Source of the DNA: Auanema rhodensis
Taxonomy: Eukaryota > Animalia > Nematoda
Direction of reading: 5' to 3'
Length of the DNA stretch: 64,000 bases
NCBI GenBank assembly: GCA_964057225.1
Contig: OZ059897.1
Span: 6,696,001 to 6,760,000, forward strand
Shown here: positions 1 through 24,184 of the stretch, piece after piece
Layout of the letters: each line of letters opens with the position of its first letter
Position numbering within the stretch: position 1 is the stretch's first letter
The notes under the pieces: model-generated
What the model was told of the DNA's origin: nothing
The model's database searches: none
The model's input: only the letters and a program-made list of their open reading frames with translations
Made by a program: the position numbers and the translations under genes

Positions 1-3000
1 GTGGGATTTGAACCCACGCCCTCATACGAGGACCAGAACACCCAACTCTATACACAGAGTAAGAGATGATGAACAACTCTTGAGTCTGGCGCCTTAGACC
101 ACTCGGCCATCCGTGCTTCGAACACCGTCATTTGTGATCAATAGATGATCGTACCAAGTACAGATGAGCAAGAAAAAGTTGAAGAAAACCTTAAAAGGTA
201 TGCACGGAGTGGGATTTGAACCCACGCCCTCATACGAGGACCAGAACACCCAACTCTATACACAGAGTAAGAGATGATGAACAACTCTTGAGTCTGGCGC
301 CTTAGACCACTCGGCCATCCGTGCTTCGAACACCGTCATTTGTGATCAATAGATGATCGTACCAAGTACAGATGAGCAAGAAAAAGTTGAAGAAAACCTT
401 AAAAGGTATGCACGGAGTGGGATTTGAACCCACGCCCTCATACGAGGACCAGAACACCCAACTCTATACACAGAGTAAGAGATGATGAACAACTCTTGAG
501 TCTGGCGCCTTAGACCACTCGGCCATCCGTGCTTCGAACACCGTCATTTGTGATCAATAGATGATCGTACCAAGTACAGATGAGCAAGAAAAAGTTGAAG
601 AAAACCTTAAAAGGTATGCACGGAGTGGGATTTGAACCCACGCCCTCATACGAGGACCAGAACACCCAACTCTATACACAGAGTAAGAGATGATGAACAA
701 CTCTTGAGTCTGGCGCCTTAGAGCACTCGGCCATCCGTGCTTCGAACACCGTCATTTGTGATCAATAGATGATCGTACCAAGTACAGATGAGCAAGAAAA
801 AGTTGAAGAAAACCTTAAAAGGTATGCACGGAGTGGGATTTGAACCCACGCCCTCATACGAGGACCAGAACACCCAACTCTATACACAGAGTAAGAGATG
901 ATGAACAACTCTTGAGTCTGGCGCCTTAGACCACTCGGCCATCCGTGCTTCGAACACCGTCATTTGTGATCACTAGATGATCGTACCAAGTACAGATGAG
1001 CAAGAAAAAGTTGAAGAAAACCTTAAAAGGTATGCACGGAGTGGGATTTGAACCCACGCCCTCATACGAGGACCAGAACACCCAACTCTATACACAGAGT
1101 AAGAGATGATGAACAACTCTTGAGTCTGGCGCCTTAGAGCACTCGGCCATCCGTGCTTCGAACACCGTCATTTGTGATCAATAGATGATCGTACCAAGTA
1201 CAGATGAGCAAGAAAAAGTTGAAGAAAACCTTAAAAGATATGCACGAAGTGGGATTTGAACCCACGCCCTCATACGAGGACCAGAACACCCAACTCTATA
1301 CACAGAGTAAGAGATGATGAACAACTCTTGAGTCTGGCGCCTTAGACCACTCGGCCATCCGTGCTTCGAACACCGTCATTTGTGATCACTAGATGATCGT
1401 ACCAAGTACAGATGAGCAAGAAAAAGTTGAAGAAAACCTTAAAAGGTATGCACGGAGTGGGATTTGAACCCACGCCCTCATACGAGGACCAGAACACCCA
1501 ACTCTATACACAGAGTAAGAGATGATGAACAACTCTTGAGTCTGGCGCCTTAGAGCACTCGGCCATCCGTGCTTCGAACACCGTCATTTGTGATCAATAG
1601 ATGATCGTACCAAGTACAGATGAGCAAGAAAAAGTTGAAGAAAACCTTAAAAGATATGCACGGAGTGGGATTTGAACCCACGCCCTCATACGAGGACCAG
1701 AACACCCAACTCTATACACAGAGTAAGAGATGATGAACAACTCTTGAGTCTGGCGCCTTAGACCACTCGGCCATCCGTGCTTCGAACACCGTCATTTGTG
1801 ATCAATAGATGATCGTACCAAGTACAGATGAGCAAGAAAAAGTTGAAGAAAACCTTAAAAGGTATGCACGGAGTGGGATTTGAACCCACGCCCTCATACG
1901 AGGACCAGAACACCCAACTCTATACACAGAGTAAGAGATGATGAACAACTCTTGAGTCTGGCGCCTTAGACCACTCGGCCATCCGTGCTTCGAACACCGT
2001 CATTTGTGATCAATAGATGATCGTACCAAGTACAGATGAGCAAGAAAAAGTTGAAGAAAACCTTAAAAGGTATGCACGGAGTGGGATTTGAACCCACGCC
2101 CTCATACGAGGACCAGAACACCCAACTCTATACACAGAGTAAGAGATGATGAACAACTCTTGAGTCTGGCGCCTTAGAGCACTCGGCCATCCGTGCTTCG
2201 AACACCGTCATTTGTGATCAATAGATGATCGTACCAAGTACAGATGAGCAAGAAAAAGTTGAAGAAAACCTTAAAAGGTATGCACGGAGTGGGATTTGAA
2301 CCCACGCCCTCATACGAGGACCAGAACACCCAACTCTATACACAGAGTAAGAGATGATGAACAACTCTTGAGTCTGGCGCCTTAGAGCACTCGGCCATCC
2401 GTGCTTCGAACACCGTCATTTGTGATCACTAGATGATCGTACCAAGTACAGATGAGCAAGAAAAAGTTGAAGAAAACCTTAAAAGGTATGCACGGAGTGG
2501 GATTTGAACCCACGCCCTCATACGAGGACCAGAACACCCAACTCTATACACAGAGTAAGAGATGATGAACAACTCTTGAGTCTGGCGCCTTAGACCACTC
2601 GGCCATCCGTGCTTCGAACACCGTCATTTGTGATCAATAGATGATCGTACCAAGTACAGATGAGCAAGAAAAAGTTGAAGAAAACCTTAAAAGGTATGCA
2701 CGGAGTGGGATTTGAACCCACGCCCTCATACGAGGACCAGAACACCCAACTCTATACACAGAGTAAGAGATGATGAACAACTCTTGAGTCTGGCGCCTTA
2801 GACCACTCGGCCATCCGTGCTTCGAACACCGTCATTTGTGATCAATAGATGATCGTACCAAGTACAGATGAGCAAGAAAAAGTTGAAGAAAACCTTAAAA
2901 GGTATGCACGGAGTGGGATTTGAACCCACGCCCTCATACGAGGACCAGAACACCCAACTCTATACACAGAGTAAGAGATGATGAACAACTCTTGAGTCTG

Positions 3001-4614
3001 GCGCCTTAGACCACTCGGCCATCCGTGCTTCGAACACCGTCATTTGTGATCAATAGATGATCGTACCAAGTACAGATGAGCAAGAAAAAGTTGAAGAAAA
3101 CCTTAAAAGGTATGCACGGAGTGGGATTTGAACCCACGCCCTCATACGAGGACCAGAACACCCAACTCTATACACAGAGTAAGAGATGATGAACAACTCT
3201 TGAGTCTGGCGCCTTAGACCACTCGGCCATCCGTGCCTCGAACACCGTCATTTGTGATCAATAGATGATCGTACCAAGTACAGATGAGCAAGAAAAAGTT
3301 GAAGAAAACCTTAAAAGGTATGCACGGAGTGGGATTTGAACCCACGCCCTCATACGAGGACCAGAACACCCAACTCTATACACAGAGTAAGAGATGATGA
3401 ACAACTCTTGAGTCTGGCGCCTTAGACCACTCGGCCATCCGTGCTTCGAACACCGTCATTTGTGATCAATAGATGATCGTACCAAGTACAGATGAGCAAG
3501 AAAAAGTTGAAGAAAACCTTAAAAGGTATGCACGGAGTGGGATTTGAACCCACGCCCTCATACGAGGACCAGAACACCCAACTCTATACACAGAGTAAGA
3601 GATGATGAACAACTCTTGAGTCTGGCGCCTTAGACCACTCGGCCATCCGTGCTTCGAACACCGTCATTTGTGATCAATAGATGATCGTACCAAGTACAGA
3701 TGAGCAAGAAAAAGTTGAAGAAAACCTTAAAAGGTATGCACGGAGTGGGATTTGAACCCACGCCCTCATACGAGGACCAGAACACCCAACTCTATACACA
3801 GAGTAAGAGATGATGAACAACTCTTGAGTCTGGCGCCTTAGACCACTCGGCCATCCGTGCTTCGAACACCGTCATTTGTGATCAATAGATGATCGTACCA
3901 AGTACAGATGAGCAAGAAAAAGTTGAAGAAAACCTTAAAAGGTATGCACGGAGTGGGATTTGAACCCACGCCCTCATACGAGGACCAGAACACCCAACTC
4001 TATACACAGAGTAAGAGATGATGAACAACTCTTGAGTCTGGCGCCTTAGACCACTCGGCCATCCGTGCTTCGAACACCGTCATTTGTGATCAATAGATGA
4101 TCGTACCAAGTACAGATGAGCAAGAAAAAGTTGAAGAAAACCTTAAAAGGTATGCACGGAGTGGGATTTGAACCCACGCCCTCATACGAGGACCAGAACA
4201 CCCAACTCTATACACAGAGTAAGAGATGATGAACAACTCTTGAGTCTGGCGCCTTAGACCACTCGGCCATCCGTGCCTCGAACACCGTCATTTGTGATCA
4301 ATAGATGATCGTACCAAGTACAGATGAGCAAGAAAAAGTTGAAGAAAACCTTAAAAGGTATGCACGGAGTGGGATTTGAACCCACGCCCTCATACGAGGA
4401 CCAGAACACCCAACTCTATACACAGAGTAAGAGATGATGAACAACTCTTGAGTCTGGCGCCTTAGACCACTCGGCCATCCGTGCTTCGAACACCGTCATT
4501 TGTGATCAATAGATGATCGTACCAAGTACAGATGAGCAAGAAAAAGTTGAAGAAAACCTTAAAAGGTATGCACGGAGTGGGATTTGAACCCACGCCCTCA
4601 TACGAGGACCAGAA
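1..4614 (-). tRNA. Block of 21 complete tRNA-Leu(CAA) genes plus 2 partial copies (left of the gap)
   Basis: Copies at 201..324, 409..532, ... 4361..4484; partial copies at 1..116 (window edge) and 4569..4614 (cut by the gap). Confidence 0.95.
201..324 (-). tRNA. tRNA-Leu(CAA) with 40-nt intron (representative first complete copy)
   Basis: Reverse complement: GCACGGA TG GCC GAGTGGTCTAA GGC G CCAGA CT CAA G [AGTTGTTCATCATCTCTTACTCTGTGTATAGAGTTGGGTG] T TCTGG TCCTCGTATGAGGGC GTGGG TTCAAAT CCCAC TCCGTGC A. All stems pair; long variable arm; intron at the canonical 37/38 site; A and B boxes intact; T4 and T5 runs just downstream. Confidence 0.97.
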
Positions 4615-4814
4615 NNNNNNNNNNNNNNNNNNNNNNNNNNNNNNNNNNNNNNNNNNNNNNNNNNNNNNNNNNNNNNNNNNNNNNNNNNNNNNNNNNNNNN
4701 NNNNNNNNNNNNNNNNNNNNNNNNNNNNNNNNNNNNNNNNNNNNNNNNNNNNNNNNNNNNNNNNNNNNNNNNNNNNNNNNNNNNNNNNNNNNNNNNNNNN
4801 NNNNNNNNNNNNNN
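4615..4814. other. Assembly gap (200 N) inside the array
   Basis: Exactly 200 N, a round placeholder size, so the true array length is unknown. Confidence 0.99.
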
Positions 4815-4815
4815 A

Positions 4816-7800
4816 TGCACGGAGTGGGATTTGAACCCACGCCCTCATACGAGGACCAGAACACCCAACTCTATACACAGAGTAAGAGATGATGAACAAC
4901 TCTTGAGTCTGGCGCCTTAGACCACTCGGCCATCCGTGCTTCGAACACCGTCATTTGTGATCAATAGATGATCGTACCAAGTACAGATGAGCAAGAAAAA
5001 GTTGAAGAAAACTTTAAAAGGTATGCACGGAGTGGGATTTGAACCCACGCCCTCATACGAGGACCAGAACACCCAACTCTATACACAGAGTAAGAGATGA
5101 TGAACAACTCTTGAGTCTGGCGCCTTAGAGCACTCGGCCATCCGTGCTTCGAACACCGTCATTTGTGATCAATAGATGATCGTACCAAGTACAGATGAGC
5201 AAGAAAAAGTTGAAGAAAACCTTAAAAGGTATGCACGGAGTGGGATTTGAACCCACGCCCTCATACGAGGACCAGAACACCCAACTCTATACACAGAGTA
5301 AGAGATGATGAACAACTCTTGAGTCTGGCGCCTTAGACCACTCGGCCATCCGTGCTTCGAACACCGTCATTTGTGATCAATAGATGATCGTACCAAGTAC
5401 AGATGAGCAAGAAAAAGTTGAAGAAAACCTTAAAAGGTATGCACGGAGTGGGATTTGAACCCACGCCCTCATACGAGGACCAGAACACCCAACTCTATAC
5501 ACAGAGTAAGAGATGATGAACAACTCTTGAGTCTGGCGCCTTAGAGCACTCGGCCATCCGTGCTTCGAACACCGTCATTTGTGATCAATAGATGATCGTA
5601 CCAAGTACAGATGAGCAAGAAAAAGTTGAAAAAAACCTTAAAAGGTATGCACGGAGTGGGATTTGAACCCACGCCCTCATACGAGGACCAGAACACCCAA
5701 CTCTATACACAGAGTAAGAGATGATGAACAACTCTTGAGTCTGGCGCCTTAGACCACTCGGCCATCCGTGCTTCGAACACCGTCATTTGTGATCAATAGA
5801 TGATCGTACCAAGTACAGATGAGCAAGAAAAAGTTGAAGAAAACCTTAAAAGGTATGCACGGAGTGGGATTTGAACCCACGCCCTCATACGAGGACCAGA
5901 ACACCCAACTCTATACACAGAGTAAGAGATGATGAACAACTCTTGAGTCTGGCGCCTTAGACCACTCGGCCATCCGTGCTTCGAACACCGTCATTTGTGA
6001 TCAATAGATGATCGTACCAAGTACAGATGAGCAAGAAAAAGTTGAATAAAACCTTAAAAGGTATGCACGGAGTGGGATTTGAACCCACGCCCTCATACGA
6101 GGACCAGAACACCCAACTCTATACACAGAGTAAGAGATGATGAACAACTCTTGAGTCTGGCGCCTTAGACCACTCGGCCATCCGTGCTTCGAACACCGTC
6201 ATTTGTGATCAATAGATGATCGTACCAAGTACAGATGAGCAAGAAAAAGTTGAAGAAAACCTTAAAAGGTATGCACGGAGTGGGATTTGAACCCACGCCC
6301 TCATACGAGGACCAGAACACCCAACTCTATACACAGAGTAAGAGATGATGAACAACTCTTGAGTCTGGCGCCTTAGACCACTCGGCCATCCGTGCTTCGA
6401 ACACCGTCATTTGTGATCAATAGATGATCGTACCAAGTACAGATGAGCAAGAAAAAGTTGAAGAAAACCTTAAAAGGTATGCACGGAGTGGGATTTGAAC
6501 CCACGCCCTCATACGAGGACCAGAACACCCAACTCTATACACAGAGTAAGAGATGATGAACAACTCTTGAGTCTGGCGCCTTAGACCACTCGGCCATCCG
6601 TGCTTCGAACACCGTCATTTGTGATCAATAGATGATCGTACCAAGTACAGATGAGCAAGAAAAAGTTGAAGAAAACCTTAAAAGGTATGCACGGAGTGGG
6701 ATTTGAACCCACGCCCTCATACGAGGACCAGAACACCCAACTCTATACACAGAGTAAGAGATGATGAACAACTCTTGAGTCTGGCGCCTTAGACCACTCG
6801 GCCATCCGTGCTTCGAACACCGTCATTTGTGATCAATAGATGATCGTACCAAGTACAGATGAGCAAGAAAAAGTTGAATAAAACCTTAAAAGGTATGCAC
6901 GGAGTGGGATTTGAACCCACGCCCTCATACGAGGACCAGAACACCCAACTCTATACACAGAGTAAGAGATGATGAACAACTCTTGAGTCTGGCGCCTTAG
7001 AGCACTCGGCCATCCGTGCTTCGAACACCGTCATTTGTGATCAATAGATGATCGTACCAAGTACAGATGAGCAAGAAAAAGTTGAAGAAAACCTTAAAAG
7101 GTATGCACGGAGTGGGATTTGAACCCACGCCCTCATACGAGGACCAGAACACCCAACTCTATACACAGAGTAAGAGATGATGAACAACTCTTGAGTCTGG
7201 CGCCTTAGACCACTCGGCCATCCGTGCTTCGAACACCGTCATTTGTGATCAATAGATGATCGTACCAAGTACAGATGAGCAAGAAAAAGTTGAAGAAAAC
7301 CTTAAAAGGTATGCACGGAGTGGGATTTGAACCCACGCCCTCATACGAGGACCAGAACACCCAACTCTATACACAGAGTAAGAGATGATGAACAACTCTT
7401 GAGTCTGGCGCCTTAGACCACTCGGCCATCCGTGCTTCGAACACCGTCATTTGTGATCAATAGATGATCGTACCAAGTACAGATGAGCAAGAAAAAGTTG
7501 AAGAAAACTTTAAAAGGTATGAACGGAGTGGGATTTGAACCCACGCCCTCATACGAGGACCAGAACACCCAACTCTATACACAGAGTAAGAGATGATGAA
7601 CAACTCTTGAGTCTGGCGCCTTAGAGCACTCGGCCATCCGTGCTTCGAACACCGTCATTTGTGATCAATAGATGATCGTACCAAGTACAGATGAGCAAGA
7701 AAAAGTTGAATAAAACCTTAAAAGGTATGCACGGAGTGGGATTTGAACCCACGCCCTCATACGAGGACCAGAACACCCAACTCTATACACAGAGTAAGAG

Positions 7801-10800
7801 ATGATGAACAACTCTTGAGTCTGGCGCCTTAGACCACTCGGCCATCCGTGCTTCGAACACCGTCATTTGTGATCAATAGATGATCGTACCAAGTACAGAT
7901 GAGCAAGAAAAAGTTGAAGAAAACCTTAAAAGGTATGCACGGAGTGGGATTTGAACCCACGCCCTCATACGAGGACCAGAACACCCAACTCTATACACAG
8001 AGTAAGAGATGATGAACAACTCTTGAGTCTGGCGCCTTAGACCACTCGGCCATCCGTGCTTCGAACACCGTCATTTGTGATCAATAGATGATCGTACCAA
8101 GTACAGATGAGCAAGAAAAAGTTGAAGAAAACCTTAAAAGGTATGCACGGAGTGGGATTTGAACCCACGCCCTCATACGAGGACCAGAACACCCAACTCT
8201 ATACACAGAGTAAGAGATGATGAACAACTCTTGAGTCTGGCGCCTTAGACCACTCGGCCATCCGTGCTTCGAACACCGTCATTTGTGATCACTAGATGAT
8301 CGTACTAAGTACAGATGAGCAAGAAAAAGTTGAAGAAAACCTTAAAAGGTATGCACGGAGTGGGATTTGAACCCACGCCCTCATACGAGGACCAGAACAC
8401 CCAACTCTATGCACAGAGTAAGAGATGATGAACAACTCTTGAGTCTGGCGCCTTAGACCACTCGGCCATCCGTGCTTCGAACACCGTCATTTGTGATCAA
8501 TAGATGATCGTACCAAGTACAGATGAGCAAGAAAAAGTTGAAGAAAACCTTAAAAGGTATGCACGGAGTGGGATTTGAACCCACGCCCTCATACGAGGAC
8601 CAGAACACCCAACTCTATACACAGAGTAAGAGATGATGAACAACTCTTGAGTCTGGCGCCTTAGACCACTCGGCCATCCGTGCTTCGAACACCGTCATTT
8701 GTGATCAATAGATGATCGTACCAAGTACAGATGAGCAAGAAAAAGTTGAAGAAAACCTTAAAAGGTATGCACGGAGTGGGATTTGAACCCACGCCCTCAT
8801 ACGAGGACCAGAACACCCAACTCTATACACAGAGTAAGAGATGATGAACAACTCTTGAGTCTGGCGCCTTAGACCACTCGGCCATCCGTGCTTCGAACAC
8901 CGTCATTTGTGATCAATAGATGATCGTACGAAGTACAGATGAGCAAGAAAAAGTTGAAGAAAACCTTAAAAGGTATGCACGGAGTGGGATTTGAACCCAC
9001 GCCCTCATACGAGGACCAGAACACCCAACTCTATACACAGAGTAAGAGATGATGAACAACTCTTGAGTCTGGCGCCTTAGACCACTCGGCCATCCGTGCT
9101 TCGAACACCGTCATTTGTGATCACTAGATGATCGTACTAAGTACAGATGAGCAAGAAAAAGTTGAAGAAAACCTTAAAAGGTATGCACGGAGTGGGATTT
9201 GAACCCACGCCCTCATACGAGGACCAGAACACCCAACTCTATGCACAGAGTAAAAGATGATGAACAACTCTTGAGTCTGGCGCCTTAGACCACTCGGCCA
9301 TCCGTGCTTCGAACACCGTCATTTGTGATCAATAGATGATCGTACCAAGTACAGATGAGCAAGAAAAAGTTGAAGAAAACCTTAAAAGGTATGCACGGAG
9401 TGGGATTTGAACCCACGCCCTCATACGAGGACCAGAACACCCAACTCTATACACAGAGTAAGAGATGATGAACAACTCTTGAGTCTGGCGCCTTAGACCA
9501 CTCGGCCATCCGTGCTTCGAACACCGTCATTTGTGATCAATAGATGATCGTACCAAGTACAGATGAGCAAGAAAAAGTTGAAGAAAACCTTAAAAGGTAT
9601 GCACGGAGTGGGATTTGAACCCACGCCCTCATACGAGGACCAGAACACCCAACTCTATACACAGAGTAAGAGATGATGAACAACTCTTGAGTCTGGCGCC
9701 TTAGACCACTCGGCCATCCGTGCTTCGAACACCGTCATTTGTGATCAATAGATGATCGTACCAAGTACAGATGAGCAAGAAAAAGTTGAAGAAAACCTTA
9801 AAAGGTATGCACGGAGTGGGATTTGAACCCACGCCCTCATACGAGGACCAGAACACCCAACTCTATACACAGAGTAAGAGATGATGAACAACTCTTGAGT
9901 CTGGCGCCTTAGACCACTCGGCCATCCGTGCTTCGAACACCGTCATTTGTGATCAATAGATGATCGTACCAAGTACAGATGAGCAAGAAAAAGTTGAAGA
10001 AAACTTTAAAAGGTATGCACGGAGTGGGATTTGAACCCACGCCCTCATACGAGGACCAGAACACCCAACTCTATACACAGAGTAAGAGATGATGAACAAC
10101 TCTTGAGTCTGGCGCCTTAGAGCACTCGGCCATCCGTGCTTCGAACACCGTCATTTGTGATCAATAGATGATCGTACCAAGTACAGATGAGCAAGAAAAA
10201 GTTGAAGAAAACCTTAAAAGGTATGCACGGAGTGGGATTTGAACCCACGCCCTCATACGAGGACCAGAACACCCAACTCTATACACAGAGTAAGAGATGA
10301 TGAACAACTCTTGAGTCTGGCGCCTTAGACCACTCGGCCATCCGTGCTTCGAACACCGTCATTTGTGATCAATAGATGATCGTACCAAGTACAGATGAGC
10401 AAGAAAAAGTTGAAGAAAACCTTAAAAGGTATGCACGGAGTGGGATTTGAACCCACGCCCTCATACGAGGACCAGAACACCCAACTCTATACACAGAGTA
10501 AGAGATGATGAACAACTCTTGAGTCTGGCGCCTTAGACCACTCGGCCATCCGTGCTTCGAACACCGTCATTTGTGATCAATAGATGATCGTACCAAGTAC
10601 AGATGAGCAAGAAAAAGTTGAAGAAAACCTTAAAAGGTATGCACGGAGTGGGATTTGAACCCACGCCCTCATACGAGGACCAGAACACCCAACTCTATAC
10701 ACAGAGTAAGAGATGATGAACAACTCTTGAGTCTGGCGCCTTAGACCACTCGGCCATCCGTGCTTCGAACACCGTCATTTGTGATCAATAGATGATCGTA

Positions 10801-19494: not shown

Positions 19495-22123
19495 ATGCGG
19501 GACTTTGTCCCTTTCCTGGTTTTATCAACAGTTCAGTTAGTTTATACTCATATAGCTCTAACGTTTCCTGAAGTTCGATATCCTCCTTTGGATTTTCTTG
19601 ATACATCACGCACAATGGGGCCATGTGGTGTGCCAAAACCGAGAGACCGTAAGTGTAGACCAGTTTTCAATTCTAAATATCTTCTATTAGCCCATTATAC
19701 AAATTTAATTGTCGGCACAACATATAATTTCACTTGGAGAATGCAATATCCTCATCAAGTTTGTATTTAAGATTTACTTCCTATAGTAATGTGAGTTGTA
19801 GGGTGGTTATCGGTTACTTCTTCTTGATCCAACAGGTGAAATAGTTGAAAGTTTATCACCTATGAATGGTATTGAATTCACTGGAACGGAAGATGCAACG
19901 TAATACAAAACAAAATTTTCTAGTTTATTTGCTAAATTCTTTGTTCTAGTATTCAATCAGAAAGCATAAAGTTTTCTCGAGCTTGCCTTGAATGTACAGT
20001 GATTCTTGAACGTCAAGCTCTAGAATGGGGAAAGTCGTATCGCTTCCGAAGCTGTGCTGATGTCAATATACTTCAAGCAGCACCAGGTAATTCATTTCTC
20101 TTAAAACAACTTCTCTACAACAAGACTGAATTGGTCTTCTTCAGCTGAATCCGTTTGTAACGATCGAGGAACAATGGAGAATGGACAATGTCTATGTGAA
20201 AATGGTTATACGGGAGATATATGCCAATATCTAGGTAACAACAAGTGAAAATATCTAGAAAAAAAGAAAGGAAACCAGCGAAATGAACCGATTAACTCAA
20301 TTTTGACATTGAAAATGAAAGCCCACGTGTTTTTTACGTGAAATAACGTTTTGCAGCTCATTGTGAAAGGGATTCTGACTGTATGAACGGAGGAAAATGC
20401 GTGTCAGAATCAAATTCATTAATTTCCAAAACATGCTACTGTTCATATGGATATTTCGGAAAAAATTGTGACCAGAGTAAGTTGAAGACTGAAATTCTTC
20501 CATAACAAGTTTGAAAAAAAACTTTTCATTGTTAATTCCAGATTTCAATCGTCCGAATGATGCATGCTTTGCTTATGCAAATAGGGATGAAAAATCGTTT
20601 GACAAATATGAAATGTTCAATGAAAATTGCTACAACAAAGAATCTTTTAACGAAAAAGATTATATTTATTTTAGAAAAGTGAAAGTATGAAGTTTAATTT
20701 TATATTAACTTATTCTAAATTTGTTTTTAATTTTATTAGACTGATATCGAAATTATTCTGGATTTTGAATCAACATCATGGCTATCACTCGGCTGGAGAC
20801 CTGAAGGATTAGATACATCATGTCGATTATTTCCTGATTTAGAAGGTATTCTCTTTTTTCTTGTAGATAATATCGTTCCATGAAAACATTATTTCATAGA
20901 AATTTTAATCTTAATCTACCGTTTTATGAGCCTTTCTTTTTATTTTTCACCAAAAGAGGAAGAAAATCCAATTGTATCCCAAATAAAAACACAAAACTTC
21001 ATTAAATTTGATTTATATTTTTCTAACTTTTTAAGGGGTTCGTTCTAAACGTTCTCAATTTGATGCTCCACCCACTGTTTTCAACAATGTAAGAAGATAT
21101 AATCTTAATTATAATTTAGAAATCAATATTTTGTTCAGGATGAAGTTCCACCCATAGTAAATAGAGAAGATGATCTACCTCCAATTAGAGTTGCTCAAGA
21201 AGGTCCACGACCTAGAATGCCAGAGAACAATGGATTACGTATGTTTCGATATTTCAGAACTATCATCTCTTCAAATCATTATAGTGAAAAGTGCATTAGA
21301 TGCTCCATTGCACGCTATGGACTGCATTGATATCGTAGTCGGAGCAGTACGTGATGGTAGACTTCGTATCAATGATATGTATTCAAGAGACAGATCAACA
21401 CCTATTGACGATTTTTGGTAAAGGATTGGCTTGTGGGGTTTTAAATTATATTTTTCGTTTTCAGGTATGAGGGAGAGATATCCTTCCTCGCTGCATATGG
21501 TATTGAAGTCGATGGTCGAACGGTTGTTATGTTCCGTAGGTGGATGCAAGGTTTCTCTTCCTATGAATCATCCTCATATCTATAGATTGAAATTATAGAG
21601 ATTGAACCAACTGATCATCCATTGGGACCGGGAAAACAATTCGTTATTTGGGCTAAAGGTCAGATGCAAGGCTCCTATAGCCATGGAGCTTCTTCTGGGC
21701 TTGATGGAAAACATAGCAATCAAGAATTTTATGTTGACGATGTTTTAAAATATCATGGAAGTATGGTTTATTGCTTCAATTTATTTTGAATTAAATAGCT
21801 GCAGATCGCAATCGCGGAGTATATCCCCTGGATTTCACAGTTCCACCGGCTAAGTATCCAAAACCAGATGATGTAGCATTTGGAGTGCATACTGCCCAAG
21901 GTTGAATTTCAGCTTTTTTTGAGAAAAACAACAGAAAGAATACGATTCAGGGCACCCAAAACAAAGACCATTAGAAATGTCTTCAACTAGAACACAAGAA
22001 GCAACAACAGAAACACCTGCATCAGTCAAGCCAAAGATAGCCGACACTAATGAGCCTGACGGAGCATCACTTTTTTCATTTACGATACTCACATTATGCA
22101 TATCATTCTATTTATACGTATAA
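19495..22123 (+). CDS. Secreted, probably GPI-anchored protein: N-terminal His-brace (LPMO-like) domain + 2 EGF-like + DOMON domain (nahoda-like); multi-exon
   Basis: Spliced translation: signal peptide MRDFVPFLVLSTVQLVYT|HIALTFPEVRYPPLDFLDTSRTMGPCG...WRMQYPHQGGY...CLECTVILERQALEWGKSYRFRSCADVNI. EGF: CNDRGTMENGQCLCENGYTGDIC and CMNGGKC...CYCSYGYFGKNC. DOMON: WLSLGW...HAMDCIDIVVG...DMYSRDRSTP...VMFRR...VIWAKG...KYHG. Ser/Thr stalk and hydrophobic tail GASLFSFTILTLCISFYLYV*. Confidence 0.88.
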
Positions 22124-22175
22124 ATAAATAATTTATTTGTTAAATAAAAATTATCTCAATAGTTTCATTTGATTA

Positions 22176-23174
22176 TTACTTTGATTTAGAAAAGTCAACA
22201 CATTTGTAAGTACATGTACAATCACATCCACATCTGCCACTCCTCTTCTTATGAATTACACGTACAGGTTCTACTCCATTTGCACATTGTTCAATTCCAC
22301 ATTGACAATCACATTCTTCACAGTCTGCTAAAATAGAATTTTATGAAGATGACGAAGAAGATAATCCATACTATCAATAGCTATCAATGGAAATGCAACA
22401 GATTCAAAGGGACAGATTTCCGTCTTCCACAGCAAATCAACCAGTGTACGATTCTGATCATATTGATGCCAACATTGAACTCCACGATATAACTAAAGTA
22501 TTTAGATGAAAAGTATCAAGTATGAAAGACATCATTCTTACTAAATCTGATACAATTGAATGTGAAAAATCCTCTTTCGCATTGTTCAATTGGTCATGAA
22601 TACATCCTGTTGCATCTATGGTAACTGATGGCGCCGTGCAACAAATTGGATCCAGACTATAGTATCATAGAGTGTACGGTATTTTTGGTTCTGTTTTATT
22701 ATCTTACACAAGAGCTTGAGTTACATTTTCTAAGAGAAAAGCGTGGAAACCACCGAGAAAAGTATCACCAGTACAGCCTGAGATTCAAAAAAAGTCATGA
22801 AAAAACATTGGAAGTCGTACAAACCTTCAAGTAATCCTGTACATTTGGGTATGTTCTGTTGATGTGAACAAGTTGTTTCTTCTGGTAAAGCTATTTGCTC
22901 ACACTCAATTGTTAAAGATCCTAATACACTATAATGCGTTTTAGCTCGACGAATACCAGAAACTCTAAAACCTTTATGACACTCCAGAGCCTGCAATTAT
23001 ATGGAAAATCAAACAAAGTTTTTCGAATAAAGTTTATGAAACTTTTTTTTCAGTTTCTTGATTATCAACTTAATGAATTATTATTCGAAAACTTACATAA
23101 TCAACGTCGGCTAAAACTACTTCTGATAATGATAGAATAAGTAAGAGAGATAAAAGACGAAACCGATGAAGCAT
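22176..23174 (-). CDS. Secreted cysteine-rich protein of unknown function; multi-exon
   Basis: Exon 1 MLHRFRLLSLLLILSLSEVVLADVDY|gtaag (signal peptide). Later exons: ALECHKGFRVSGSLTIECEQ...KCTGLLEGLYDFQCFF; LDPICCTAPSVTIDATGC; YRGVQCWHQY...EICPF; DCEECDCQCGIEQCANG...GRCGCDCTCTYKCVDFSKSK*. Confidence 0.75.
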
Positions 23175-23734: not shown

Positions 23735-24184
23735 TCATGAAGCTTTAAGTGCATCTGACAGAAGAACAGCAAGCTTTCGTTGTTCTTTCCTCCATCTAAT
23801 TCGGCGATTTTGAAACCAAACTTTTATCTGCAACATATTAGCATAAGAAGGGAATCTTAGAAAAACTAAAAAAATTGTTATCAAGAGTACCTGAGATATT
23901 CCAATATGCAGTTGTTCTGCTAGGCGTTCGCGATCGCTTCCCACCAAGTATTGCTGTTTTTGGAATTCAGCTTCTAGCACAGCTAGCTGCCATGCCGTGA
24001 ATGTTGTTCGATTCCGGCGTTTAAGATCATGATCGCGATCTGATGATATTGACGACATGGGAGGTTCTGTTGTAGAAGCCACAAGTACAGATGAATAAAT
24101 AGGTGATGAGACAGAAAATGGTAGACAATATACCGTCCGGGAACTTGATAATTGTCCGCAAACCGACGTATTTTCCTCTATCAT
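23735..24184 (-). CDS. Homeobox transcription factor, Vax/Noto/Emx-like (ceh-7-like); one intron at 23828-23890; the start may be the internal Met near 24058
   Basis: RRNRTTFTAWQLAVLEAEFQKQQYLVGSDRERLAEQLHIGISQ|IKVWFQNRRIRWRK; TATAAA on the minus strand near 24220. Confidence 0.9.
   Translation of the reverse strand: MIEENTSVCGQLSSSRTVYCLPFSVSSPIYSSVLVASTTEPPMSSISSDRDHDLKRRNRTTFTAWQLAVLEAEFQKQQYLVGSDRERLAEQLHIGISQVLLITIFLVFLRFPSYANMLQIKVWFQNRRIRWRKEQRKLAVLLSDALKAS

Follow-up and report, generated by a model that had tools for sequence, protein, structure and literature searches.

The gene at positions 19495 to 22123 of the 64,000-nucleotide stretch of Auanema rhodensis DNA analysed here (the window; all features given below lie on its plus strand) raises the question of whether an animal protein could hold a copper site of the LPMO type and a heme-binding DOMON domain in one chain. 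In a preliminary description made from the sequence, the protein was read as a candidate "self-sufficient" redox enzyme. Its LPMO-like domain was said to begin with His as the mature residue 1, to contain a second His and to be followed by two EGF repeats and a DOMON domain with a Met/His pair and a furin-like RSKR in an insertion; a GPI-type tail, a nahoda-like affiliation and an annotation restricted to EGF/DOMON were also suggested. The fusion of LPMO-like and DOMON domains was confirmed in our study and the individual features were borne out, as given at each of them below; the interpretation was supported in part. The protein joins a miniature LPMO histidine-brace domain to a DOMON domain with heme-type residues, a design found animal-wide, and may carry its own electron relay.

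In regard to the gene itself, its structure is established and it is transcribed. According to reading frames and splice sites, the coding sequence runs from the ATG at 19495 to the stop codon at 22121-22123 and comprises 1719 nt, or 572 codons plus stop (572 aa), in 15 exons (19495-19648, 19691-19758, 19802-19899, 19950-20086, 20145-20234, 20357-20476, 20542-20684, 20740-20845, 21036-21088, 21139-21238, 21285-21417, 21465-21550, 21599-21760, 21805-21900 and 21951-22123). All 14 introns are of the GT..AG type, and in four runs (X1-X4) belonging to one study the spliced transcript contigs match every one of them exactly, including the 21760->21805 acceptor. A different acceptor for exon 14, at 21799, was rejected because it disagrees with the Auanema orthologue and with the spliced contigs. 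Protein P0101 of Auanema sp. JU1783 aligns colinearly with exons 1-14, at 82% identity. Profiles made from family homologues also match the exons colinearly, exons 1-4 with positions 1-131 of profile A1 (E 1.4e-6 to 1.3e-18) and exons 7, 8, 11, 12 and 13 with positions 3-210 of profile A2 (E 1.4e-10 to 2.5e-23), and the gene is therefore not a product of chance.

The first 18 codons (19495-19548) encode a hydrophobic prepeptide, MRDFVPFLVLSTVQLVYT, whose positions -3 and -1 are Val and Thr, respectively. The following CAT codon (19549-19551) encodes His19 of the precursor, placed after ...VQLVYT, which would become His1 of the mature protein and is the proposed N-terminal ligand of the brace. 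Conservation was counted over 74 homologues, with domain ranges anchored by phmmer, and in 67 of them His directly follows the signal peptide. In the 63 homologues with a Met start, it is preceded by a prepeptide of 9-35 aa that follows the -3/-1 rule, with A/G/S/C/T at -1 in 61/63 and V/A/S/T/I/C/G at -3 in 62/63, and on the strength of this conservation cleavage is predicted directly before His1. The LPMO-like domain extends over exons 1-4 (19549-20086 with introns, about 134 aa), as delimited by profile A1, by Pfam LPMO_10 and BIM1-like matches of the homologues and by the model of an orthologue. It contains the proposed second brace ligand, mature His55 in YPHQGG (CAT, 19753-19755), conserved in 65/74 homologues, and the proposed axial residue in Y-R-F-R-SCADVNI, equivalent to mature Phe121 (TTC, 20044-20046) and present in 68/74. 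Pro7 (74/74) and Arg10 (73/74) are even more constant, and Tyr53, two positions ahead of the second His, is found in 51/74.

No Pfam family matched the N-domain exons when these were scanned one by one, and PF03067 matched nowhere in a six-frame scan of the Auanema rhodensis genome. The exons are too short for such detection, so that neither result means absence, and whole domains of orthologues were scanned instead. Among the 74 isolated N-domains, LPMO_10 (PF03067) matched 42 at E up to 1 (best 6.1e-7), the Haemonchus domain with 25.8 bits exceeding the gathering cut-off of 23, and BIM1-like (PF20238) matched 23 (best E 4.3e-6). Profile A1 found nothing among PDB sequences, hence there is no residue-level alignment to solved LPMOs. 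The fold was compared by means of an AlphaFold model of the N-domain of the Haemonchus orthologue (about 70% identical to the Auanema rhodensis protein; pLDDT 93.6, pTM 0.88). The top 50 Foldseek matches of this model were all LPMOs, which rules out a Reeler-type or other beta-sandwich, and the 50 matches listed by VIA-align (Z 9.1-13.5) were all LPMOs or LPMO-like proteins. The best of them was the insect AA15 protein TdAA15A (PDB 5msz), with Z 13.5, rmsd 2.8, 132/132 residues aligned and 20% identity. Residue 1 of the model falls on residue 1 of TdAA15A and on residue 28 of CBP21, each the first residue of its chain, which brings His1 onto the N-terminal His of solved LPMOs. Pfam on orthologues and the modelled fold thus place the N-domain in the LPMO superfamily. 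The solved LPMO and LPMO-like structures that were matched come from microbes, entomopoxviruses, a fern and one insect.

The family resembles TdAA15A in being an animal protein with His straight after the signal peptide and a second His that follows a Trp-containing strand, and Pfam LPMO_10 is common to both. The AA15 active site is formed by His1, His91, an axial Tyr or Phe, and Ala two residues before the second His. In comparison, the N-domain of the family has 132 aa instead of 195, its second His stands at 55 instead of 91, and most of the L2/protrusion surface of TdAA15A is missing. Phe is proposed in the axial position, where TdAA15A has Tyr184, and Tyr stands two residues ahead of the second His in place of Ala89; unlike TdAA15A, the domain also continues into EGF-EGF-DOMON and a presumed membrane anchor. 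The stretch that separates the two His, at the place of the L2 loop in other LPMOs, is very short, which leaves little room for a flat polysaccharide-binding face. AA10 structures (CBP21, 2bem; 5aa7) align with the N-domain model from the first residue of each chain at Z 11.4-12.5. AA10 proteins have an axial Phe and a C-terminal strand motif of the F-x-x-x-x-D-V type, and AA10 and AA15 N-termini start with H-x5-P-x2-R; the AA10 axial Phe, the strand motif and this start recur in the family N-domain, and judging from the motif Phe121 may be equivalent to the axial Phe/Tyr of AA10/AA15. That activity is compatible with a small LPMO is shown by 5aa7, which according to its entry title is a chitin-active LPMO domain of 15.5 kDa. 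The matched AA10 structures are those of bacterial and entomopoxvirus proteins with 10-20% identity, and their entry titles mention neither DOMON nor EGF.

The LPMO-like domain is followed by two EGF repeats, the first in exon 5 (20145-20234; Pfam EGF_Teneurin 1.6e-7, EGF_2 1.9e-5) and the second in exon 6 (20357-20476; Pfam EGF 2.9e-5), and the pair is conserved in the family. The DOMON domain occupies exons 7-14 (20542-21900), with a disordered insert of about 50 aa in exons 9-10, and was delimited by profile A2 together with Pfam and the model of orthologues. Exon 11 matches Pfam DOMON weakly (2.9e-4); of five orthologues scanned with PF03351, four scored above its cut-off of 32.7, with 34.3-44.4 bits. 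A DOMON fold was also obtained when the Auanema orthologue of 82% identity was modelled (pLDDT 82.4). The proposed axial ligands of the heme are the Met of LHAMDC (ATG, 21317-21319), kept in 74/74 homologues, and the His of KYHG (CAT, 21754-21756), kept in 69/74. They are 90-122 residues apart, 94 in the commonest compact form, and the corresponding spacing is 93 in fly CG8399 (Met286/His379) and 84 in plant HYP1 (M90/H174) (PMC10691727, PMC10784544). In VIA-align comparisons, the DOMON of dopamine beta-hydroxylase (DBH) was the best match by Z (13.5), and the heme-b DOMONs of CDH, PDH, EBDH and Nxr cytochrome subunits followed with Z 10.4-11.8; DBH binds no heme and is without such Met/His ligands (PMC4846438; PMC10691727). 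Matches to CBM9 fell to Z 7.0-7.6, which together with the conserved Met/His pair makes a sugar-binding DOMON of the CBM9 type less likely. Among PDB sequences profile A2 found only a chance match (E 0.68) and none to any solved DOMON, hence there is no residue-level alignment to DOMON cytochromes. A complex prediction of DOMON with heme against the LPMO-like domain, run without alignments, scored 0.08, which speaks neither for nor against contact.

At the start of the DOMON insert, the dibasic furin/kexin-type motif RSKR can be read at 21041-21052. The nematode insert measures 50-90 aa, carries the RxKR site and lies just before the Met. The pattern R-x-K/R-R occurs at the equivalent place in 24/74 homologues, namely in ascarid, filarial, strongylid, Steinernema and several rhabditid nematodes and in a tick, and is suggestive of cleavage by a convertase. 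Behind the DOMON domain, a Ser/Thr/Pro-rich linker with candidate omega-site residues (21951-22069, ending in ..KIADTNEPDGAS) leads into a hydrophobic tail of 17 residues, LFSFTILTLCISFYLYV (22070-22120), with a mean Kyte-Doolittle value of 1.98 and no charged residue behind it. This end of the protein, ..KIADTNEPDGAS + LFSFTILTLCISFYLYV, is similar in nearly all full-length nematode orthologues, and low-complexity linkers of this kind are found in orthologues as well. A signal for GPI attachment is built from small omega residues, a short polar spacer and 15-20 hydrophobic residues at the very end, and the tail is a candidate for one. Tick P0147 and bee nahoda P0190, both examined whole, run far past the DOMON domain, and the bee protein has, as judged by eye, an apparent hydrophobic membrane span and a long tail.

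The gene belongs to a family known as nahoda in insects, C34C6.3 in C. elegans and Bm2559 in Brugia, whose orthologues are 50-82% identical and share the domain order. The bee orthologues carry the name nahoda, which agrees with the affiliation guessed at the outset, and the homologues are indeed annotated as EGF/DOMON only. The family was found in three phyla, in nematodes, arthropods and holothurians, and a paralogue in the Auanema rhodensis genome retains all five key residues. In the literature searched, no functional studies of nahoda, C34C6.3 or Bm2559 were found. A 2019 paper mentions in passing a branch of an LPMO tree with DOMON/EGF and LPMO_10 sequences, and in an extracellular interactome the Ig protein ZIG-8 was identified as a binding partner of C34C6.3 (bioRxiv 10.1101/2024.07.08.602367). 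Bm2559 and C34C6.3 are listed under a promoter motif enriched among genes that, in a series covering the L3-L4 moult, differ between L3 and L3 day 6 (PMC7337397). The moulting gene described as "DOMON protein" in Trichinella (PMC6757440) is a different gene or belongs to a different species, its primer having no match in the 64-kb window. A feature-cluster search gave leads only, with scores below 0.9, to clusters with LPMO_10 or BIM1-like and to clusters named SCE4755 family polysaccharide monooxygenase.

Six Caenorhabditis species depart from the conserved pattern, with H1, D18, R21, H55, G57, G58, R110, A112, E114 and Y119 all replaced together. In the other 68 sequences, these ten positions are 87-100% conserved, Asp18 in 68/68. 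The second His is thus lost along with His1, and Asp18 along with the brace. The DOMON His is replaced by Gln only in C. elegans, C. briggsae, C. japonica and C. remanei, that is, within Caenorhabditis lineages already without the brace. As read from the sequences, both brace His and the eight further N-domain positions were lost first and the DOMON His of the elegans group later. The correlated loss took place in one lineage and counts as a single series of evolutionary events. Outside this lineage, Auanema JU1783 and Meloidogyne enterolobii also seem to have lost the brace, perhaps independently. Caenorhabditis has kept its orthologues, which are about 50% identical to the Auanema rhodensis exons, and C. 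elegans C34C6.3 has neither the two brace His nor the DOMON His. Since the protein is retained without the sites, part of its function needs no copper.

The explanation that we favour, with a probability of roughly 0.55, is a secreted, membrane-tethered protein of the nahoda/C34C6.3 family with two probable redox centres. Our data establish the gene model, its transcription, both folds and the conservation and correlated loss of the key residues, whereas copper, heme, electron transfer, substrate, GPI anchoring and convertase cleavage at RSKR are inferred. The N-terminal domain of 130 aa would be a stripped-down LPMO fold, in which His1, through its amino group and side chain, and His55 would bind one copper ion in a histidine brace after signal cleavage, with Phe121 in the axial position and Asp18, Arg21, Arg110, Glu114 and Tyr119 as the surrounding shell. 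The two EGF repeats would serve as a spacer, and the DOMON domain would hold a b-type heme via the Met of LHAMDC and the His of KYHG, as in cellobiose dehydrogenase, AIR12 and CYBDOM/SDR2. An external donor, either ascorbate or a membrane cytochrome b561/CYBDOM, could reduce the heme, which would turn the Cu(II) of its own molecule or of a membrane neighbour into Cu(I). The reduced copper site could then activate O2/H2O2 to oxidise some part of the apical extracellular matrix, or pass Cu(I) on. As for the "self-sufficient" enzyme of the preliminary description, a possible relay (heme) and a possible acceptor (Cu) do occur in the chain; the term is nevertheless overstated because the chain contains no primary reductant domain, that is, no dehydrogenase or transmembrane cytochrome supplying electrons.

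Several known proteins can be compared with this arrangement. The CDH cytochrome reduces LPMO copper. The heme-b DOMON cytochromes (CDH AA8, AIR12, CYBDOM/SDR2/CG8399) have the same fold and a Met/His pair at similar spacing (PMC10691727, PMC10784544), and AIR12 is GPI-anchored, as the nematode protein may be. In contrast to them, the family has the presumed Cu acceptor in the same chain and has no electron source. Dopamine beta-hydroxylase and tyramine beta-hydroxylase likewise combine DOMON and a copper oxygenase domain in one secreted chain, but the copper domains of DBH are of the PHM type and that of the family is of the LPMO type; the DBH DOMON has neither heme ligands nor an open pocket (PMC4846438). 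Several points stand against the favoured explanation: the heme-less DBH DOMON is the best structural match of the DOMON domain, the L2 segment is very short, the family occurs in holothurians, Caenorhabditis retains the protein without the sites, the correlated loss is confined to one lineage, and the chain is without an electron source. A wider proposal, in which the nahoda/C34C6.3 family would be a widespread animal class of membrane-anchored LPMO-type copper enzymes with a built-in heme-b relay, electrons passing outward via the DOMON heme to the distal copper, can be put forward only tentatively.

What the copper site would act on leads to several alternatives. In the first, the protein would be a true matrix-active LPMO, whose copper site cleaves chitin or another glycan of the cuticle, pharynx lining or eggshell in moulting or development, with the DOMON domain as a tethered reductant. 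C. elegans makes chitin and yet has no such site, and to our knowledge chitin is not known from holothurians, where the family is present; the short L2 region and the small surface are a further difficulty. In its favour are the closest structures, which are chitin-active AA15 and AA10 proteins, the H-x5-P-x2-R start, Glu114 as a candidate second-sphere residue, the listing of Bm2559 and C34C6.3 under the moult-series promoter motif (PMC7337397) and the axial Phe, which is typical of chitin-active AA10 and TdAA15B (PMC5823890). Taken together, we regard this alternative as rather doubtful.

It is also conceivable, if still somewhat less probable, that the protein handles copper in the manner of X325/Bim1, the brace, perhaps with Asp18 as third ligand, capturing surface Cu(II) and the DOMON heme reducing it to Cu(I) for a CTR1-type importer, with no polysaccharide oxidised. 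Fungal X325/Bim1 proteins are small and have a GPI anchor behind a Ser/Thr-rich linker, and we know of no proven polysaccharide activity among them. Small size, Ser/Thr linker and GPI-type tail are common to them and to the family, and LaX325 (6ibi), with a small LPMO-like fold as in the family, was aligned at Z 11.3; its solved structure is fungal and the entry title mentions no cytochrome partner. The 23/74 BIM1-like matches, the presence in holothurians and the invariant Asp18 that disappears with the brace point in the same direction, as does the reductase activity of other DOMON cytochromes, ferric in animal CG8399/SDR2 and, by description, ferric/cupric in plant HYP1 (PMC10691727, PMC10784544). 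However, LaX325 is less similar to the N-domain (118 residues aligned, 11% identity) than AA15/AA10 (Z 13.5 and 20% identity), LPMO_10 matches outnumber BIM1-like ones (42/74 against 23/74), and Asp18 is no more than a candidate third ligand. That both folds are only binding modules of a non-redox surface protein for adhesion or signalling, the conserved His and Met being structural or binding something other than Cu and heme, is improbable despite the persistence of Caenorhabditis orthologues without the three His, the binding of ZIG-8 (bioRxiv 10.1101/2024.07.08.602367), the proximity by Z to the heme-less DBH DOMON and the EGF repeats typical of adhesion proteins, since a His exactly at the signal cleavage site in 67/74 sequences of three phyla has no obvious cause but a brace-type site, ten N-domain positions were lost en bloc in one lineage, and the Met (74/74) and His (69/74) keep the spacing of heme DOMONs.

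Returning to the family as a whole, nematodes, arthropods and holothurians have proteins, annotated merely as EGF/DOMON, that would display an LPMO-fold domain with an intact brace signature at the cell surface. Nematodes are absent from the taxa of the AA15 survey, in which the word does not appear (PMC5823890), and, if the wider proposal given above holds, LPMO-like proteins would be recorded from nematodes and echinoderms for the first time. No earlier case of a natural cytochrome-LPMO fusion was found in the literature searched, and the family would then be the first. A chain with DOMON heme-b ligands would allow the open question of how LPMO copper becomes reduced in vivo to be tested in genetically tractable animals, where C. 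elegans represents a natural brace-less version and Pristionchus, with the P. pacificus orthologue PRIPAC_90265, an intact one, thus a built-in control. Related to this, Caenorhabditis would offer a natural series of step-by-step site losses. Finally, a role of the protein in moulting, in the formation of the eggshell or in the uptake of copper, if it has one, would make its orthologues exposed targets on the surface of filarial, strongylid and plant-parasitic nematodes.

The gene at 19495-22123 on the forward strand was modelled manually on the basis of its reading frames and GT..AG splice sites, which gave 15 exons separated by short, nematode-style introns, with 1719 coding bases for a protein of 572 amino acids. 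In a public-run search, about half of the sampled words from the gene were present in four runs of a single study, presumably RNA, as expected for spliced RNA. When contigs from these runs were aligned to the window, one contig per run reproduced 14 of 14 introns at the modelled positions with GT..AG ends, and no sequence differences from the window gene were seen in the spliced contigs of the four runs. The junction 21760->21805, found in these contigs, settles the choice between two candidate acceptors. Because the spliced contigs reproduce all 14 introns exactly, the gene is genuine and transcribed, and together with the hand-built model they show the coordinates of the preliminary description, 19495-22123, to be exact. 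Just 3′ of the stop codon, 22114-22200 is repeated sequence that was passed over when the contigs were aligned, which leaves the transcript's 3′ end unplaced. A Cys-rich open frame (..ADCEECDCQCGIEQCANGVEPVRVIHKKRSGRCGCDCTCTYKC..) at 22179-22340 on the reverse strand, probably the terminal exon of an adjacent gene, converges on the studied gene, with the stops about 55 bp apart. An unrelated neighbour, an apparently intron-split open frame at 23735-24184 on the reverse strand, carries a homeodomain signature (RRNRTTFTAWQLAVLEAEF ... KVWFQNRRIRWRKEQ).

Exon 4 alone was searched against a representative protein library, and its matches led to full-length database homologues that served as proxies; Pfam scans, folds and conservation were obtained on these, and the window was linked to them exon by exon. 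The family profile of the N-terminal domain (positions 1-131) matches window exons 1-4 colinearly (E 1.4e-6 to 1.3e-18), and the family DOMON profile (positions 3-210) matches exons 7, 8, 11, 12 and 13 in the same manner (E 1.4e-10 to 2.5e-23). Exons 1-14 are colinear with the protein of Auanema sp. JU1783 at 82% identity; the corresponding values are 63% for Haemonchus contortus, 57% for Pristionchus fissidentatus and 50% for C. elegans. With the Pristionchus protein as query, a word search found 95 homologues, distributed among nematodes (rhabditids, strongylids, filariae, ascarids, Strongyloides, tylenchids, Plectus and Romanomermis) and in ticks, a millipede, bees, salmon louse and holothurians. 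Almost every one carries the name "EGF-like" or "DOMON domain-containing", in agreement with the earlier remark that such proteins are usually annotated only in this way, and the bee members are called "DOMON-like domain-containing protein nahoda", which bears out the guess of nahoda-like homology. The C. elegans member is C34C6.3, a ZIG-8 binder in an extracellular interactome (bioRxiv 10.1101/2024.07.08.602367). The pair Bm2559/C34C6.3 is listed for a promoter motif over-represented in genes that distinguish L3 day 6 from L3 within the Brugia L3-L4 moult series (PMC7337397). No functional study of the nahoda/C34C6.3 family was found in the literature searched.

Some 5.8 Mb away, the contig holds another gene of this architecture, a divergent second copy on the minus strand at approximately 2827-8664 within 12536000-12545999. 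Its HSPs with the protein of Auanema sp. JU1783 show 26-55% identity, or about 40% over the DOMON. This copy retains AYS followed by HVRLTYPAAR, with His after a signal peptide, as well as ..IPH and GGIR, FFYSCADVNI, two EGF repeats, NAMECTD and FFKYHGKNQRG, so both brace histidines and the DOMON Met and His are intact.

In the window translation, His19 of the precursor directly follows MRDFVPFLVLSTVQLVYT. Among 63 homologues with a Met start, the equivalent His is preceded by a prepeptide 9-35 residues long, 20 on average, with A, G, S, C or T at position -1 in 61 and V/A/S/T/I/C/G at position -3 in 62. Conservation of a His at the predicted cleavage site across three phyla is consistent with the requirement of an N-terminal histidine ligand and with the proposed cleavage leaving His as residue 1. 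In the alignment of 74 N-terminal domains, His1 is conserved in 67 sequences, Pro7 in 74, Arg10 in 73, His55 in 65, Phe121 in 68 and four Cys in 72-74. Pfam LPMO_10 was matched by 42 of the 74 isolated domains and BIM1-like by 23, and the Haemonchus domain exceeds the LPMO_10 gathering cut-off. Its AlphaFold model (pLDDT 93.6, pTM 0.88) was compared with the PDB by Foldseek, where the best 50 matches were all LPMOs (AA10, AA16, AA11, AA9, AA15 and fusolin), as the LPMO-like reading had anticipated. In VIA-align the top match was insect AA15 (5msz; Z 13.5, rmsd 2.8, 132/132 residues aligned, 20% identity), followed by AA10s (Z up to 12.5), AA16 and AA11 (11.6) and X325 (11.3). Each of these alignments starts with residue 1 of the model placed on the N-terminal residue of the solved chain (for example residue 1 of TdAA15A and residue 28 of CBP21), which is the copper-binding His in these enzymes. 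The orthologue model predicts an LPMO fold, and the conserved residues give the domain a brace signature. Compared with known LPMOs, the domain is unusually small and lacks most of the L2 surface, since the second His lies at 55 instead of 91 as in TdAA15A (PMC5823890). The proposed axial Phe, equivalent by motif position, is as in chitin-active AA10s and TdAA15B (PMC5823890).

The DOMON domain exceeded the Pfam cut-off in four of five orthologues scanned. A model of this region from the Auanema orthologue (pLDDT 82.4, residues 85-135 disordered) gave the DBH DOMON as best VIA-align match (Z 13.5), followed by the heme-b parts of ethylbenzene dehydrogenase, nitrite oxidoreductase, pyranose dehydrogenase and cellobiose dehydrogenase (Z 10.4-11.8), below which Z falls to 7.6 (CBM9). 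DBH binds no heme and lacks a Met/His ligand pair (PMC4846438; PMC10691727). The candidate heme ligands, Met of LHPMDC and His of KYHG, are present in 74/74 and 69/74 sequences of the DOMON alignment. Their spacing is 90-122 residues; the commonest compact form has 94, compared with 93 in fly CG8399 (Met286/His379; PMC10691727) and 84 in plant HYP1 (M90/H174; PMC10784544), where the Met/His pair was proposed to ligate b-heme by comparison with cellobiose dehydrogenase. A profile search found no usable match to the family DOMON profile among PDB sequences. Heme binding is likely rather than established.

From the conserved Cys (SCRLFP) to the Met there are 19-21 residues in non-nematode members and 50-90 in many nematodes. 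This insert starts with R-x-K/R-R in 24 of 74 homologues (ascarids, filariae, strongylids, Steinernema, several rhabditids and a tick), and the furin-like RSKR described for the window is present at 21041-21052 on the forward strand. A convertase cut there would keep the sandwich halves joined, perhaps by a disulfide of the two conserved Cys, and could uncover the pocket on its Met side. At its C-terminus the window protein has a linker rich in Ser/Thr and then, as its last element, a hydrophobic tail of 17 residues, an ending shared by nearly all full-length nematode orthologues, which suggests a GPI signal, in line with the tail first proposed. In contrast, the tick (607 aa) and Xylocopa nahoda (1077 aa) proteins extend well past the DOMON. 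By eye, both carry an extra Cys-containing region, possibly a second DOMON-like domain, and Xylocopa nahoda has a hydrophobic stretch resembling a membrane span, beyond which lies a long tail.

His1 is absent in six of six Caenorhabditis orthologues of the alignment, with N, G, S or A instead, and His55 is also absent. A column scan revealed ten positions replaced together in the six species (H1, D18, R21, H55, G57, G58, R110, A112, E114 and Y119), each with 87-100% conservation among the remaining 68 sequences, while the fold-defining Cys, Trp49 and Phe121 are retained. We read the brace and its shell as one functional site apparently given up as a unit. The decay is stepwise: C. auriculariae keeps His1, but its residue 55 is Ser; C. 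bovis and C. angaria have lost both brace histidines and keep the DOMON His; in C. elegans, C. briggsae, C. japonica and C. remanei the DOMON His is also replaced by Gln, with Met still kept. The DOMON His is lost only where the brace is already gone, which would fit functional coupling of the heme and copper sides, suggestive rather than statistically proven because the losses fall in one lineage. The window protein keeps all of these residues.

Changed sites were also observed elsewhere. The closest orthologue, from Auanema sp. JU1783, has Asn for His1 (..FGEC followed by NIALTFPEAR), where the window has CAT (His), and keeps His55, Phe121 and the DOMON Met and His; this is either an independent recent brace loss or a sequence or annotation error. 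In plant-parasitic tylenchids the copper site is partly changed, Meloidogyne enterolobii carrying Lys at position 55 together with Glu at 121, and the cyst nematodes Globodera and Heterodera having Glu at 121 but keeping both histidines.

Counted from the membrane, the order of anchor, linker, DOMON, two EGF repeats and candidate copper domain is that expected for an outward electron path, in which electrons would pass from a membrane or extracellular donor to the DOMON heme and then to the N-domain copper. Calling the protein "self-sufficient" was too strong, because nothing in the chain could generate electrons. Two roles for the reduced copper are about equally probable. It could oxidize matrix glycans in the LPMO manner, as argued for by the closest structural relatives (insect AA15 first, AA10s next), the proposed axial Phe and the Brugia orthologue in the moult-series listing. 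Alternatively, the protein could handle copper in a Bim1-like way, with the heme as cupric reductase; the very short His1-to-His55 segment, the BIM1-like matches, the occurrence of the family in holothurians, the loss of the site in chitin-making C. elegans and the GPI/linker design point in this direction. A purely adhesive role may apply to the brace-less Caenorhabditis proteins, but does not account for a cleavage-site His in other species.

Both domains are members of known superfamilies. Their fusion was glimpsed earlier in one passing sentence and is otherwise undescribed. The same holds for the minimal LPMO-like domain and the shell residues particular to it, for its distribution across animals, nematodes among them, and for the stepwise loss of the sites in Caenorhabditis. 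The finding concerns the whole family, of which the window gene is an intact, expressed member.
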